64,000 nucleotides of DNA from positions 248,001 to 312,000 of the IMG/VR virus record IMGVR_UViG_3300044712_000810; one strand, given 5' to 3'. Position 1 is the first letter of the stretch. Each line of letters begins with the position of its first letter. Position numbers and translations under genes: made by a program. A model generated the notes under the pieces. It saw only the letters and a program-made list of their open reading frames with translations. It was not told the DNA's origin and ran no database searches. Of the stretch, positions 21,728-55,468 are shown piece after piece.

Positions 21728-23047
21728 ATGGATTGGAAATATGTTCACACCTTGACCAAATTTACATTTTCAGATCATGAAATTACTTTACTCAATCAAC
21801 ATGTTGATAGTTACTTAATTAGTTTAATTACAGGACTACAACAACAATCATTTGGATTTGATACTGTTACAGAAGTAGCAAAACGAATCCGTGGTTTACG
21901 CGCGAGATTTGGTCAAGATAAAGAATGGTTTATTGACTCAGGTGGATATTCCATTATTGTTGGGGATATCCACCCTAGAGATATGACAAAGTGTATTCAA
22001 TGCTATAACTATTATTTAGAAACATTCGCTGAAAAGGATTGTGATAAAATATTTAGTTTAGACATTCCAATACTACTTAAATATCCAGAATATAATACAG
22101 TTCAATATATTAAAGAACAGAATTATAAGTCTGGAGTAATGTCAAAAGAAATTTTAGACAGTAATAAATCATTATATGAAAAATTTATGTTCATTTGGCA
22201 GTTTAAAACTCTAAATCAGTATAAGATTTGGAAAGAATATTATAATGATATTTATGCAGATACGACTGAATTGCATAATTTTGGTATAGGAGGTCAAGTC
22301 GGACTTCGACAAGCTGCCGGAATTGATTTCAGTCCATTTACTGCACTGACGTATAAACTTATACAACTAATTCGAGAAAAAAACCTAAATAAAAAAAGTA
22401 CAATTCATATGCTTGGGATATATTCTTATCCTGATCGTTTTTTAATGGCGTTTTTTCAAAAGTTATTCAATCAAGTTTACTTTAAAGATCTTGCGCCATC
22501 CGTCGAAATAACATTCGATACAGTTCATCATACTATTCAAGGACATTTTCGCGGCCAAACAATGACGCCGTTTATACTTGATGAGAATAATAATGTTCAT
22601 AACAAATTTATTCCAGATTTAGTTGATAAACTTGATAATATCATACATGATCCTGATGTTCTTAATGCGGTTTTAAAACAAGTTGAAAAAATCAAAAATG
22701 GTGAACGACTTACTGATCCCCATTTGATTGCGACGTTAGAAGTTATCAAACATTCACAAATTGATAAGGTTATTGATATGGTTCTTGACCAATATAACTT
22801 TATTGATTTATTTGTGCAATCTGGTAACTTCAATAAATTTAAAAACAAAGCTACTGCAATATTTCAAACATTAGAACAAAAGTATCCAATCGCATTTAAG
22901 AATAGGACGGCTCAAAATCTACTTAATTTCCAATATGTGTATCCTTTACACAATTGGTTTGTAAATTCTGGTGATTTATCTAAATTCGAACCTATGATGG
23001 AAACATTTATCCGTCATATTAACTTCCCGTTTGACTTGAAGGAGTAG
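21728..23047 (+). CDS. TGT/DpdA-fold transglycosylase-like protein
   Basis: FIDSGGYS (TGT DSGG motif), IFSLDIP, FGIGG, IHMLG and TFDT appear in TGT-like order. Confidence 0.6.
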   Translation: MDWKYVHTLTKFTFSDHEITLLNQHVDSYLISLITGLQQQSFGFDTVTEVAKRIRGLRARFGQDKEWFIDSGGYSIIVGDIHPRDMTKCIQCYNYYLETFAEKDCDKIFSLDIPILLKYPEYNTVQYIKEQNYKSGVMSKEILDSNKSLYEKFMFIWQFKTLNQYKIWKEYYNDIYADTTELHNFGIGGQVGLRQAAGIDFSPFTALTYKLIQLIREKNLNKKSTIHMLGIYSYPDRFLMAFFQKLFNQVYFKDLAPSVEITFDTVHHTIQGHFRGQTMTPFILDENNNVHNKFIPDLVDKLDNIIHDPDVLNAVLKQVEKIKNGERLTDPHLIATLEVIKHSQIDKVIDMVLDQYNFIDLFVQSGNFNKFKNKATAIFQTLEQKYPIAFKNRTAQNLLNFQYVYPLHNWFVNSGDLSKFEPMMETFIRHINFPFDLKE

Positions 23048-24278: not shown

Positions 24279-25289
24279 ATGGCTAAAAAGCCAACAAAAA
24301 AAGAACAAGAAGTTATTAACGATATAAAAGAACATTTGGAACAAACAAAAGAACAAGTAGTTAAAGAGATATTAGATCCTTTAGGAAATAAAGAAACCGA
24401 ATTACTTAATAAAAAATATGCCATTGCGCATATTGCACAAGTATGTCTAACTATACAAGGCGAAGGACCAAAACTTGGAACTCCTTGTATATTAGTTAGA
24501 TTTGCTGGATGTAATCTACAATGTCCATTCTGTGATACAAAGTGGGCAAATAAAGAACTTCCAGATATGCTAACATTTAAAAATATATTAGAAACTGAAT
24601 TTCCAATTAAGTTATCAACTAGTGATAATTCGATTGAAAAGTTTGCTAAATATTTAAAAGACACATATTTTGATCATTATCCGATTAAACATATTATGTT
24701 CACTGGTGGTGAACCTTTTATTTCAGATAATTTAAGAATACTTACTGAAATCATGTCATTTTTAAATAATAAATTTCATACGGGAATTAAATCTATTGAA
24801 ATTGAAACCAACGGAACGCTCGTAACCGCAAGTGATATTTATAATCGATTTGTAAGTGCTAATTATGATGTACAATTAAATATTAGTCCTAAGTTAGATC
24901 TTACGGCACATAATAAACAGTATAGTTCGTTCCAGTCACTTGTGGACAAGTTTAAAATTGTACATTTATATGTTTCAGATAGAAATAATGTATTAACAAA
25001 TTTTAATTATAATTATAAATTTATTTATGATAAGGCGGGCGAAGATCTATTACGTTATTTTATAACGCAAGTAGGAATTCCAAGTGATAAGATTTGTATC
25101 ATGCCACTTACTCCGCATTTGTCAAATATGCCAAAAGATGAATTTTATAAAAAATTCAAGAAGTCATGCGAAGATACTATTTTATTCTGTGTAAAGAATA
25201 ACTACAAATTTACTGACCGTGCTCATGTCTGGATTTATGACATGAAAGAAACCAAAAACGAACTAGACGACGTCTTAAGGAGACAGTAA
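24279..25289 (+). CDS. queE: 7-carboxy-7-deazaguanine synthase, radical SAM
   Basis: TIQGEG...G.PCILVRFAGCNLQCPFCDT (CxxxCxxC), FTGGEP, IEIETNG, ISPK. Confidence 0.85.
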   Translation: MAKKPTKKEQEVINDIKEHLEQTKEQVVKEILDPLGNKETELLNKKYAIAHIAQVCLTIQGEGPKLGTPCILVRFAGCNLQCPFCDTKWANKELPDMLTFKNILETEFPIKLSTSDNSIEKFAKYLKDTYFDHYPIKHIMFTGGEPFISDNLRILTEIMSFLNNKFHTGIKSIEIETNGTLVTASDIYNRFVSANYDVQLNISPKLDLTAHNKQYSSFQSLVDKFKIVHLYVSDRNNVLTNFNYNYKFIYDKAGEDLLRYFITQVGIPSDKICIMPLTPHLSNMPKDEFYKKFKKSCEDTILFCVKNNYKFTDRAHVWIYDMKETKNELDDVLRRQ

Positions 25290-27770: not shown

Positions 27771-28193
27771 ATGGAACTTACACAAAAACAAAAAGGCAAT
27801 CTTTCAGAAATGAAAATTGCCGCAAAACTTATGGAATATGGATATACTGTTTGTTTTCCATATGGTGAAAATACAAGATTTGATTTAATTTTTGAATGCA
27901 ATTCAAAATTATATAAAGTTCAAGTTAAAACTGGAAGATACGACGAACAAACTGAAACTATTACAATTTCTTGTCGTAGTAATAAATGTTATATCAATCT
28001 TGAATCTACAGAAAATAGATCTCAAGATTATAAAAATGATGTTGATTATATAGGAACATATTGTCCACAATTAGATAAATGTTATATGATTCCTATTAAT
28101 GTTTGTGGAAAAGCTCAATTAAATTTACGAGTTGGAAATTCACAAAAAACAAATCAACATGGTACAAATTACGCATCACATTATCAAATTTGA
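27771..28193 (+). CDS. PD-(D/E)XK endonuclease (homing-like)
   Basis: KGNLSE.....LMEYGYTV.FPYGENTRFDLI...KVQVKT. Confidence 0.8.
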   Translation: MELTQKQKGNLSEMKIAAKLMEYGYTVCFPYGENTRFDLIFECNSKLYKVQVKTGRYDEQTETITISCRSNKCYINLESTENRSQDYKNDVDYIGTYCPQLDKCYMIPINVCGKAQLNLRVGNSQKTNQHGTNYASHYQI

Positions 28194-28207
28194 ATATTCT
28201 CAAATTT

Positions 28208-28218
28208 GATATGGAAAT
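28208..28218 (+). promoter_or_regulatory. Promoter-like motif variant upstream of the atypical tRNA cluster
   Basis: GATATGGAAAT. Confidence 0.45.
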
Positions 28219-28236
28219 ATTCAGTTGTACAAATTT

Positions 28237-28315
28237 CCGAGGCCTAGCTTAATATTAAAGCGCCTATCCGTTACACGATAGGAGAATACTGGTGAAATTC
28301 CGGTGCCGAGGGCCA
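28237..28315 (+). ncRNA. Atypical tRNA-like gene 1 (TTACA loop)
   Basis: Cloverleaf by hand; D-loop without GG; T-loop TGAAATT; arm CCTATC-CGTTACAC-GATAGG; ends GCCA. Confidence 0.6.
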
Positions 28316-28320
28316 TTTAT

Positions 28321-28397
28321 CGGGGACATAGCTTAAAAGAAAGCGCCTGTTCTTACAGACAGGAGAATCGTTGGTGTGATTCCGACATCCTCGACCA
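28321..28397 (+). ncRNA. Atypical tRNA-like gene 2 (Val TAC-like, one extra nt in anticodon arm)
   Basis: CGGGGAC/ATCCTCG acceptor; CCTGT-TCTTACAG-ACAGG; T-loop TGTGATT; ends ACCA. Confidence 0.65.
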
Positions 28398-28402
28398 TTT
28401 AT

Positions 28403-28477
28403 CTCGGTGTAGCTTAATTTAGAGCGCCTGTCCTTACAGACAGGAGATGATAGGCGAACCTCCTATCCCCGGGACCA
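28403..28477 (+). ncRNA. Atypical tRNA-like gene 3 (Val TAC-like, one extra nt in anticodon arm)
   Basis: CTCGGTG/CCCCGGG acceptor; CCTGTC-CTTACA-GACAGG; T-loop CGAACCT; ends ACCA. Confidence 0.65.
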
Positions 28478-28480
28478 ATT

Positions 28481-28560
28481 TTGCTGTGCATATCGAAAGA
28501 TGTGTAGTTTTGCCTCATAGTAGTCGCGAGCTATATAGAGAAATCTATCACAGCAGACCA
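28481..28560 (+). ncRNA. Atypical tRNA-like gene 4 with 8-bp acceptor stem
   Basis: TTGCTGTG/CACAGCAG-A-CCA; CATATC-GAAA-GATGTG; ATAGA-GAAA-TCTAT. Confidence 0.55.
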
Positions 28561-28563
28561 TTT

Positions 28564-28638
28564 GCGGTTGTAACTCAATTGGTAGAGTGGCAGCCTTCCA
28601 AGCTGTTAGTACGAGTTCGAGTCTCGTCTGCCGCTCCA
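28564..28638 (+). tRNA. tRNA-Gly(TCC)
   Basis: Cloverleaf; CT TCC AA loop; TCCA end. Confidence 0.9.
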
Positions 28639-28652
28639 ATTAACACAAACCT

Positions 28653-28686
28653 GGAGGCCCCGAAAGGGGTCTCCAACTTTATTTTT
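28653..28686 (+). terminator. Intrinsic terminator
   Basis: GGAGGCCCC-GAAA-GGGGTCTCC followed by a T tract. Confidence 0.75.
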
Positions 28687-28789
28687 GCATATCTTGTCGT
28701 CGCGGTCAAGAAACTCAGGCATGAGGAATTGGCGGGAGAACTGGTCACTTTCCCGCCAATTTAATCTGAAATTTAATATTCTAAAATTT

Positions 28790-40766: not shown

Positions 40767-40861
40767 GCTCCAGTAGCTCAATTGGCAGAGCATCCGGCTT
40801 ATACCCGGCTTAGCGGCTGATTACCGTAAGGTTGTGGGTTCGATTCCTACCTGGAGTACCA
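40767..40861 (+). tRNA. tRNA-Ile(TAT) with long variable arm
   Basis: CCGG-CT TAT AC-CCGG; V-arm CTTAGCGG/CCGTAAG; A73. Confidence 0.8.
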
Positions 40862-42746: not shown

Positions 42747-42821
42747 CTCTGTATAGCTCAGTGGCAGAGCTGGGAACTCTAAATTCCCCGGTCGCGAGTT
42801 CGAGTCTCGCTACAGAGGCCA
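42747..42821 (+). tRNA. Amber suppressor tRNA (anticodon CTA)
   Basis: CTCTGTA/TACAGAG, G73, CCA; GGGAA-CT CTA AA-TTCCC; canonical D-loop GG and TTCG. Confidence 0.88.
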
Positions 42822-53981: not shown

Positions 53982-54170
53982 ATGGGATGGATTAGAGATA
54001 TAGATTGTCCATTTTGTGAACATGAGTTCGAATGGGAAGTCTGGGAAAATGGTAAATGTCCAAAATGTGGTGAAGAATTTTATTGGTCAGAAGATTGCAC
54101 TGAAGATTATTCAGATTGTTGGGATAGTTTATGGTGGAATAAATGGGATGAAGAAAGGAGAAATAAATGA
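53982..54170 (+). CDS. Zinc-ribbon protein
   Basis: CPFC...CPKC; Trp-rich. Confidence 0.6.
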   Translation: MGWIRDIDCPFCEHEFEWEVWENGKCPKCGEEFYWSEDCTEDYSDCWDSLWWNKWDEERRNK

Positions 54171-55468
54171 AACTTAATTTATTAGATATAAATGAGTTTG
54201 TGACTAAAAACAATGTTAGACAAGTAAGTACAGTTCGTGTATATGAACGTCCAAATAAACTTGATGAAACCGGTCTATTTAGTGAAGTAATCTTTGGTCG
54301 TATTGGTTCAAATGACCGTCGTAAACGCTTTGGTTATATTAATTTAAAATGTCGAGTATTACATCCAGAAACTTATAGTTTACTAGTTCGTTTAGATCCT
54401 TCAATCAGTAAGTTTATAATGCAAAAAGCAACTTATGAACTTAGTGAAAATGGTGAACTCATAGAATCTGAAAATGGTGTTAATGGTGTATATAATCTTG
54501 TTGAATTCTTACCAAAAATGAAATTTGATAAGTTCAAGAATCAAGAAATTGCAAAATTTGTAAAAAAGAATCTTGATAAAATTATCATTGATAAAATTCT
54601 AGTTTTACCTGCAGGTATTCGTGACTTAAAATTATCAAAGATATCTGGTAAATCTCAAGTACAATTTGCTGAAATTAATAAATTATATGAAGCTATTATT
54701 AAACAATCAAACTCAATTCCTGATGATTTGTCTAGTTTACCACAAGAATTCTCATCAAGTTTTGTTCAAACAATTCAAAGAAAAGTACTTGAAATAAATG
54801 AATGGATCAAATCAAAAATGAAAGGTAAGTCTGGTCTTATTCGTGGTGGACTACTTAAGAAAGTAATCGACTACTCCGCCCGTCTTATCATTGTTTCTGA
54901 TCCGACTCTTAAATTAGGTCAACTTGGTTTACCTTGGCAAGTAGTACTTAAACTTTATGAACCATTTACTTTAAATTACTTTTTACATAAAGATCAAACT
55001 TCATTAGCGCTTATTCAAGATAATCTTGGCGCAAACATGACACCAGATATTAATGATCTTAAAAGATTTATTCAAAAAATAAATGAAGATCCAACAAGCA
55101 TTAGTGAACTATTAAAAGACCATCTTATTGCTGCTGCACATGACATTAGTAAAGGTAAAACCATTTTATATAAACGTGACCCGGTTGAAGCTCGTGACAA
55201 CTATATGGGCGCTGATGTTCGTGTTGATCGTGAATCTAGTGTTGCACGTATGAATCCACTTGATCTTCCAAGATGCGGTGGTGACTTTGACGGTGACCAG
55301 ATTGCTATATTCCCACTATTTACAAAAGAAGCAAATGCAGAAGCAAGTGCGAAGTTACATCCATCAAATTCAAAAGCAATGTGGACAAGTTCTGTAAGTT
55401 TAAGCAGACAACCATATTTCTTACAACTTGATGCAGCAACAACTCTTTATGCAATTACTAAGGAGTAA
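54167..55468 (+). CDS. Phage RNA polymerase, beta-prime-like N-terminal/catalytic part
   Basis: GLFSEVIFG...RKRFGYINL, ILVLPAGIR, KGKSGLIRGGLLKKVIDYSAR, KRDP, catalytic GGDFDGD. Confidence 0.9.
   Translation: MKLNLLDINEFVTKNNVRQVSTVRVYERPNKLDETGLFSEVIFGRIGSNDRRKRFGYINLKCRVLHPETYSLLVRLDPSISKFIMQKATYELSENGELIESENGVNGVYNLVEFLPKMKFDKFKNQEIAKFVKKNLDKIIIDKILVLPAGIRDLKLSKISGKSQVQFAEINKLYEAIIKQSNSIPDDLSSLPQEFSSSFVQTIQRKVLEINEWIKSKMKGKSGLIRGGLLKKVIDYSARLIIVSDPTLKLGQLGLPWQVVLKLYEPFTLNYFLHKDQTSLALIQDNLGANMTPDINDLKRFIQKINEDPTSISELLKDHLIAAAHDISKGKTILYKRDPVEARDNYMGADVRVDRESSVARMNPLDLPRCGGDFDGDQIAIFPLFTKEANAEASAKLHPSNSKAMWTSSVSLSRQPYFLQLDAATTLYAITKE

Follow-up and report, generated by a model that had tools for sequence, protein, structure and literature searches.

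An 80-nt tRNA-shaped RNA gene with GNRA-capped arms in the tRNA island of an uncultured jumbo phage

Bacteriophage T4 encodes two stable, structured RNAs that are not tRNAs, rnaC (species 1) and rnaD (species 2), which lie a few nucleotides after a tRNA-Arg gene and head-to-tail with the tRNAs of the phage tRNA unit, an arrangement in which they would share the co-transcription and processing route of those tRNAs; the T4 cluster contains a homing endonuclease (segB) too. The two RNAs are 139 and 119 nt long; a canonical T arm, its loop of the GGGUUCGAAUCCC type, is retained in rnaC. To our knowledge, no function has been assigned to either in the course of decades. Described tRNAs can themselves depart far from the canonical cloverleaf. 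In bacterial tRNA-Sec the acceptor branch measures 13 bp (8/5) and a D stem of 6 bp closes a 4-nt loop; in the tRNA-Pyl of M. alvus the D stem follows the acceptor stem without a linker, the D loop has 4 nt, and the anticodon stem carries a bulge (PMC7609411). Allo-tRNAs have a 12-bp acceptor branch split 8/4 or 9/3 and a long variable arm, and some members of this group and of the irregular tRNA polycistrons are suspected of a non-translational role (Mukai et al., PMC5389517). Phage tRNA arrays are now viewed as a means of countering host defences that cleave tRNA (for example PMC10264068).

The RNA gene studied here, which we refer to as the element, lies in a 64,000-nt window, meaning the whole stretch of DNA that was analysed (bases 248001-312000 of an IMG/VR virus record that is 314,837 bp long and carries direct terminal repeats; positions are those of the window unless stated otherwise). 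The genome has a G+C content of 33% and carries 32 tRNA genes called by ARAGORN, which cover all 20 amino acids and include three CAU tRNAs and one CUA (amber-reading) tRNA. The phage also encodes split multisubunit RNA polymerase (RNAP) subunits, an ATP-dependent ligase, a class II ribonucleotide reductase and NAMPT. Since its RNAP beta is only 24-28% identical to that of jumbo phages of the PBS1/AR9, S6 and phiR1-37 types, we regard it as an uncultured, deep-branching jumbo phage. A 439-aa protein encoded upstream of the element (21728-23047) has relatives at 49-61% identity, and the contigs of three of them (L279, L280 and L282) keep the gene order (RNAP beta, ligase, 5'-3' exonuclease, gp13-like, 439-aa protein, radical SAM, RNAP beta-prime, DEAD helicase, ribonucleotide reductase) and have no tRNA at all; the two closest relatives (P0122 and P0123, 60-61% identity) are represented by contigs of 2-3 kb. 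In our phage, ~29 kb (window ~25300-54160) separate the radical-SAM gene (24279-25289) from the RNAP beta-prime gene (54167-55468) and hold a DHH protein, 26 tRNAs, three irregular tRNA-like genes (the trio), the element, HNH and PD-(D/E)XK endonucleases, NAMPT and an AAA ATPase. Because these ~29 kb are absent from the syntenic relatives, we place the element in a lineage-specific, endonuclease-rich tRNA island.

Two further tRNAs of the window depart from the ordinary. The CUA tRNA (42747-42821; 'Pyl' in the ARAGORN output) looks canonical and is an amber suppressor, and the large open reading frames of the window are intact under code 11. The tRNA-Ile(UAU) at 40767-40861 is 95 nt long, and a long extra arm separates its anticodon arm from its T arm, which is unusual for an Ile tRNA.

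Outside the window, a second tRNA cluster (genome 37360-43629) holds a 540-aa Ro60/Rsr orthologue (TROVE + vWA_Ro60), with a YrlA-like Y RNA and an RtcB ligase nearby. The Y RNA lies between tRNA-Met and tRNA-Asp and matches RF02553 at 36 bits, below the gathering score of 69. On the linear record this locus is ~239 kb away from the element, a distance that shrinks to ~76 kb if the ends are joined. It resembles the bacterial rsr-yrlA-rtcB RNA-repair module, here inside a tRNA cluster. With its full tRNA set, RtcB, and Ro60 together with a YrlA-like Y RNA, the phage shows a heavy investment in conflicts over tRNA. Domain searches of the genome found none of the synthetase domains PF09334, PF00587 and PF00133, and neither the CCA-adding enzyme domain PF01743 nor Pth (PF01195); a phage synthetase or CCA-adding enzyme dedicated to the element was rejected on the absence of the first four.

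The element would be transcribed as the fourth of five cistrons, following the trio and preceding tRNA-Gly(UCC), between a promoter-type motif and an intrinsic terminator (Table 1). Against an expectation of 0.1, the window contains 13 occurrences of the 14-nt motif, TTNATATRRAAATA, 12 in + orientation; they lie mostly ahead of tRNA groups, also ahead of some genes (compare repeat families D7, D8, D10 and D18). Each trio gene has an 8-nt anticodon loop with UUAC and non-canonical D and T loops. ARAGORN calls these genes at relaxed thresholds only, as tRNA-??? (ttac) with the 4-base anticodon read 'Stop|Val', and their Rfam tRNA scores (24.6, 26.5 and 18.4 bits) all fall below the gathering score of 29. 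Tandem G.A/A.G mismatches occur in the acceptor stem of the first. UUACAG in the trio loop is complementary to CUGUAA, the sequence that would be expected for the anticodon loop of a GUA (Tyr) tRNA. The element starts after a 3-nt spacer (ATT) that follows the CCA of the preceding tRNA-like gene. Beyond the terminator, and before the next promoter motif, stands a second strong hairpin (28727-28761; 11-bp stem, 13-nt loop). An open reading frame running across the element (28447-28764) was judged spurious, as it overlaps tRNA-Gly and the terminator.

A wastewater metatranscriptome contig of 151 nt, at a depth of 2, is identical to 28525-28675 and covers the 3' part of the element, the spacer, tRNA-Gly and the terminator stem; it represents a precursor and not the mature 80-nt species, its length is that of one read, and the library may contain DNA. 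As weak evidence, it fits a polycistronic transcript that ends at the predicted terminator. The single DNA run containing the stretch is a rhizosphere metagenome, and the 100% identity of a wastewater contig to a phage assembled from the rhizosphere places the same or a near-identical phage in a second habitat.

Table 1. Positions of the element, its parts, its neighbours in the unit and the distant Ro60 locus
Feature	Position	Strand	Remarks
Promoter-type motif, TTGATATGGAAATA	28206-28219	+	heads the unit of the element
Three irregular tRNA-like genes (trio)	28237-28315, 28321-28397, 28403-28477	+	upstream of the element, same unit
Element (tRNA-shaped RNA gene)	28481-28560	+	80 nt
Acceptor stem, 5' strand, TTGCTGTG	28481-28488	+	pairs with 28549-28556 in MFE and centroid structures
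D-like arm	28489-28504	+	CATATC/GATGTG, 6 bp (one G.U); GAAA tetraloop; abuts acceptor without linker
Central (anticodon-position) arm	28505-28533	+	TAGTTT/GAGCTA, 6 bp; bulged U at 28511; 2 G-C pairs
Central-arm loop, CTCATAGTAGTC (RNA form CUCAUAGUAGUC)	28514-28525	+	12 nt
Single unpaired U (variable-region position)	28534	+	sole junction nucleotide of the element
T-like arm	28535-28548	+	ATAGA/TCTAT, 5 bp; GAAA tetraloop replacing the 7-nt T loop
Acceptor 3' strand, CACAGCAG, with discriminator A and CCA	28549-28560	+	
Canonical tRNA-Gly(UCC)	28564-28638	+	3 nt (TTT) downstream of the element; ARAGORN; Rfam 65.7 bits
Intrinsic terminator	28652-28675	+	10-bp stem, GAAA loop, T-rich tail; closes the unit
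Ro60 / Y RNA / RtcB locus	L278:4361-5983, L278:6628-6747, L278:9515-10630		

RNAfold predicts the element to be a four-way junction cloverleaf, with identical MFE and centroid structures and an energy of -23.1 kcal/mol (z = -2.65; 2 of 200 shuffles fold equally well), and the same cloverleaf is retained when the whole 456-nt precursor is folded. The complement folds poorly (-14.6 kcal/mol, z = -0.43); the fold is strand-specific because it contains four G.U pairs, among them the first pair of the 8-bp acceptor (U1.G72) and two within the 6-bp stem of the central arm. All of the predicted pairs are standard (27/27), both tetraloops are exact GNRA loops, and the CCA is intact. The tail consists of an A at 28557 and a genomically encoded CCA at 28558-28560, and CCA is also encoded by those array tRNAs whose 3' ends were read. 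The first six bases of the 12-nt loop are CUCAUA, which also stands at positions 32-37 in the anticodon loop of each of the three tRNA-Met genes of the phage. Every stem named in an earlier, sequence-only reading of this DNA is present where it had been placed. That reading had also given the central arm an apical CTCATA loop; its TAGTTT/GAGCTA stem holds, but CTCATA turns out to be the 5' half of the 12-nt loop, which is reached past the bulged U and two further G-C pairs.

GAAA-capped hairpins with stems of at least 5 bp number 101 in the genome against ~36 in shuffled sequence, a ~3-fold enrichment, with 68 of them on the + strand; such hairpins are the usual stable-RNA device of this phage. 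GAAA loops also occur in all three top terminator predictions near the element.

Searches with standard tRNA tools left the element unassigned. None of the 4227 models of Rfam recognised it. The tRNA clan gave no match at the gathering score or, with the cut-off relaxed to E ≤ 10, on stretches of 671 nt and of 91 nt, and at E ≤ 10 no match to tRNA, tRNA-Sec, tmRNA or YrlA was obtained, only a meaningless snoRNA alignment; the tRNA-Sec comparison to which the sequence-only reading had looked thus returned nothing, even at the most permissive setting. ARAGORN made no call on the + strand of the element by default, at the relaxed settings -ps80 and -ps60, or in mitochondrial mode by default and at -ps90, and it called no tmRNA. 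A minus-strand 'mtRNA-Ala' that it placed over the element was dismissed as a relaxed-threshold artefact.

The predicted structure departs from a canonical tRNA in its central arm and at the elbow. Its central arm is not a 5-bp stem with a 7-nt loop, and no register gives a 5-bp stem around CUCAUAG. Nor can the canonical elbow be recognised, as both the D and the T loop are GAAA, without G18/G19 or T-psi-C, and one junction nucleotide stands against the linkers 8, 9 and 26. The resemblance to tRNA-Sec that the sequence-only reading had noted is real in its dimensions: its acceptor of 8 bp, its T stem of 5 bp and its D arm of 6 bp and a 4-nt loop have the proportions of bacterial tRNA-Sec. It does not extend to membership, since the variable region is 1 nt, there is no UCA anticodon in a 7-nt loop, the T loop has 4 rather than 7 nt, and no linker separates acceptor and D stem; the discriminator is A73, where bacterial tRNA-Sec has G73. 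With allo-tRNAs the element shares the Sec-like D arm (6 bp, GAAA tetraloop) and a lengthened acceptor stem, and, as with the irregular tRNA polycistrons of soil bacteria and phages, it is found in an irregular tRNA polycistron from a soil-type sample (PMC5389517). The kinship with 8/4 allo-tRNAs proposed earlier nevertheless fails, for the branch is 8/5 and so 13 bp instead of 12, a single U takes the place of the long variable arm, and neither the anticodon loop nor the T loop is normal. The element is not a tRNA, a tRNA-Sec or an allo-tRNA.

Other tRNA-like RNAs offer partial parallels. As in M. alvus-type tRNA-Pyl and type II mitochondrial tRNAs, there is no nucleotide between acceptor and D stem, the D loop has 4 nt, and the variable region is very short; as in these compact-core tRNAs, an unpaired base interrupts a lengthened anticodon stem and G18/G19 and T-psi-C are lost (PMC7609411). 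Compact-core tRNAs, however, keep a 7-nt anticodon loop and a T loop of ~7 nt, and they decode. YrlA-type Y RNAs, whose tRNA-mimicking module is bound by Ro60/Rsr, resemble the element as non-coding imitators of tRNA, but in them the T and D loops are genuine, a long stem binds Ro, and a CCA-ended acceptor is absent; RF02553 does not match the element, whereas it does match another locus of the same genome. By kind, the nearest known things are T4 rnaC and rnaD, which we consider the closest analogues: in both phages a structured RNA that is not a tRNA lies a few nucleotides from tRNAs in a phage tRNA unit. The T4 RNAs differ from the element, with its 80 nt, GAAA caps and encoded CCA, in length and fold, and rnaC in its canonical T arm. 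No homology was detected, blastn of 28150-28700 against 50,697 phage records having matched tRNA-Gly only. Overall, the description 'divergent tRNA mimic' given in the sequence-only reading is a fair one for a tRNA-shaped gene in a tRNA operon that is too aberrant for a working tRNA.

In other large-phage tRNA arrays we observed gaps that fold as cloverleaf-like four-way junctions and are left uncalled by ARAGORN (for example L102 4639-4736, L090 2910-2996 and L120 3929-4044), which suggests that irregular tRNA-shaped RNAs may be common and under-annotated in large phages. None of these gaps resembles the element.

A covariance model built from the element alone found no paralogue in the phage's own genome. 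In ~2.3 Mb of phage loci (80 DHH-linked viral loci, the phages RTH11 and Tunturi_5, 72 further loci with a similar tRNA-Gly and, with filters off, the syntenic relatives) it returned noise only, with best E values of 0.44-1.4. Part of the element and the trio anticodon arm, each used as an exact pattern against IMG/VR, gave no match, and locus searches through a single protein (the DHH neighbour or RNAP beta) turned up no relatives. The structural pattern GAAA..CTCATA..GAAA-N13-ACCA occurs in at least 119 stretches of IMG/VR; among those listed, the phage's own copy alone passed a stem filter, with 19/19 pairs against 12/19 for the runner-up. In metagenomes, the tRNA-Gly arm had 0 matches. The central 21-mer of the element had 0 matches in genome contigs and 1 in metagenomes, which we attribute to chance, as it falls on the other strand at a GC-rich DnaJ-like coding start with unrelated flanks. 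Across the sequences searched, the element thus appears as a singleton, with no homologue or paralogue located. The failure to locate relatives is explained by the absence of the tRNA island from the syntenic relatives.

Chance is no serious explanation for the element. AT-rich sequence does form many weak hairpins, and a z score of -2.65 is modest when taken alone; a fortuitous fold in an intergenic spacer is nonetheless hardly conceivable. A genome-wide descriptor (7-bp stem, NCCA, three inner hairpins, E ≤ -18), applied to both strands of the 315 kb, returned 20 matches, namely 17 annotated tRNAs, the element and 2 matches of 97-98 nt elsewhere, so that 630 kb of strand contain two false positives, both loose and long. 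Given this rarity, finding the element precisely in the gap between two tRNA-type genes, 3 nt from each, is far beyond chance, and exact tRNA-like spacing is here combined with an encoded CCA, strand specificity and two GNRA caps. The element is clearly a real and well-formed gene. Could it then specify a genuine aminoacylated tRNA of extreme structure, which would translate with its CAU in the expanded loop or after remodelling of that loop? The encoded A73-CCA and the CU-CAU-A shared with the phage tRNA-Met genes would suit such a role, compact-core tRNAs such as that of M. alvus tRNA-Pyl exist (PMC7609411), and the phage RtcB ligase could reseal a cut loop. We nevertheless consider it very improbable. 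The 12-nt loop, the 4-nt loop at the T position and the loss of G18/G19 and T-psi-C all speak against it, as do the lack of an ARAGORN call on the + strand, including the relaxed and two mitochondrial-mode runs, and of any Rfam tRNA-clan match. The stack of D and central arms is too long for tRNA geometry, and in tRNA-Sec a 13-bp acceptor branch lowers EF-Tu binding (PMC7609411). Moreover, the phage already possesses three CAU tRNAs and a full 20-amino-acid set, and the three synthetase domains sought were not found in it.

Two main rivals are both compatible with the data. In one, a duplicated tRNA or tRNA-like gene would have drifted in a fast-turnover island, leaving an RNA that is transcribed and excised yet functionless. 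The singleton status of the element is in keeping with such an origin, as is the character of the ~29-kb island, which is missing from syntenic relatives, full of homing endonucleases and fast-evolving, and the likeness of its T stem to that of the preceding tRNA-like gene (ATAGA/TCTAT and ATAGG/CCTAT) hints at local duplication. Drift, however, degrades helices, and the wholly standard pairing, GNRA loops, near-perfect junction and context-robust fold look maintained or newly built; in our model of the fold, this perfection would count somewhat against a drifted by-product, which we judge unlikely. In the other, the element would be a processing or insulating module like the plant-mitochondrial t-element, supplying a stable fold and a site for RNase P, whereby the poorly structured trio ahead of it and the tRNA-Gly behind it would mature independently. 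It does lie between sub-threshold irregular tRNA-likes and a canonical tRNA, its architecture is that of a minihelix with A-CCA, and in the precursor fold it folds alone while the acceptor strands of tRNA-likes 1 and 3 mispair. Against this, other tRNAs of the array are only 5-15 nt apart without any such module, the neighbouring genes have acceptor stems of their own, and an 80-nt four-arm structure with a 12-nt loop exceeds what a cleavage signal needs, so that we hold a mere spacer of this sort to be decidedly unlikely.

We favour instead, at a probability of about 0.55, the reading that the element is a co-transcribed structured small RNA of ~80 nt, matured by the tRNA-processing route and serving as a look-alike of tRNA that does not decode. 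In the modelled structure, the acceptor would stack on the T-like arm to give a 13-bp minihelix with a GAAA cap, an A-CCA tail and a U at -1. Bacterial RNase P and 3' trimming exonucleases accept minihelix/ACCA-type substrates, and these features would therefore lead one to expect excision of the element like that of its neighbours. The 3' end of the element would be set once RNase P has freed the 5' end of tRNA-Gly and exonucleases have trimmed what remains, leaving a CCA-ended RNA of 80 nt that would be paired over almost its whole length, very stable and persistent. Decoding would not be expected of an RNA that has neither a 7-nt anticodon loop nor a D-loop/T-loop elbow and almost no junction nucleotides, and whose D and central stack, at ~14 bp plus the bulge, is predicted to be several base pairs longer than in tRNA. 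Two GNRA caps and the absence of linkers make a tRNA-like L shape improbable, and recognition by enzymes that read the elbow is hence uncertain.

What such a non-decoding look-alike would do is a matter of more tentative proposals. Either the minihelix with its CCA end or the exposed 12-nt loop with its CUCAUA, which resembles the Met anticodon region, would engage a tRNA-binding protein. Our guess, offered with well under even confidence, is that the element acts, as a decoy or a competitor, on a defence or toxin of the host that is directed at tRNA, for example an anticodon nuclease or a CCA-end-modifying toxin; we favour a decoy because the acceptor end and the Met-like loop are retained and because the gene context is one of tRNA conflict. 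More speculative, and in our view doubtful, is the proposal that it would be the first known member of its own class of small RNAs in phages: a 'locked' cloverleaf with GNRA caps in place of the D and T loops and a linkerless junction, made by the tRNA machinery and used as a decoy. Such an RNA would soak up an immune nuclease or a CCA-end toxin, or offer its Met-anticodon-like loop as bait, and it would act alongside the 8-nt-loop trio and the phage's repair set of RtcB, Ro60 and Y RNA. An alternative use of the loop, as an antisense regulator of phage genes, was discarded, there being 11 near-complementary sites against ~16 in shuffles.

The element keeps an acceptor minihelix and CCA without any decoding feature and is thus a clean and easily synthesised object on which to ask, first, which of the enzymes that handle tRNA and of the defence proteins read the acceptor end alone and, second, whether phages deploy decoys of tRNA. 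Should it be merely debris, it would show the speed at which tRNA islands generate new structured RNAs.
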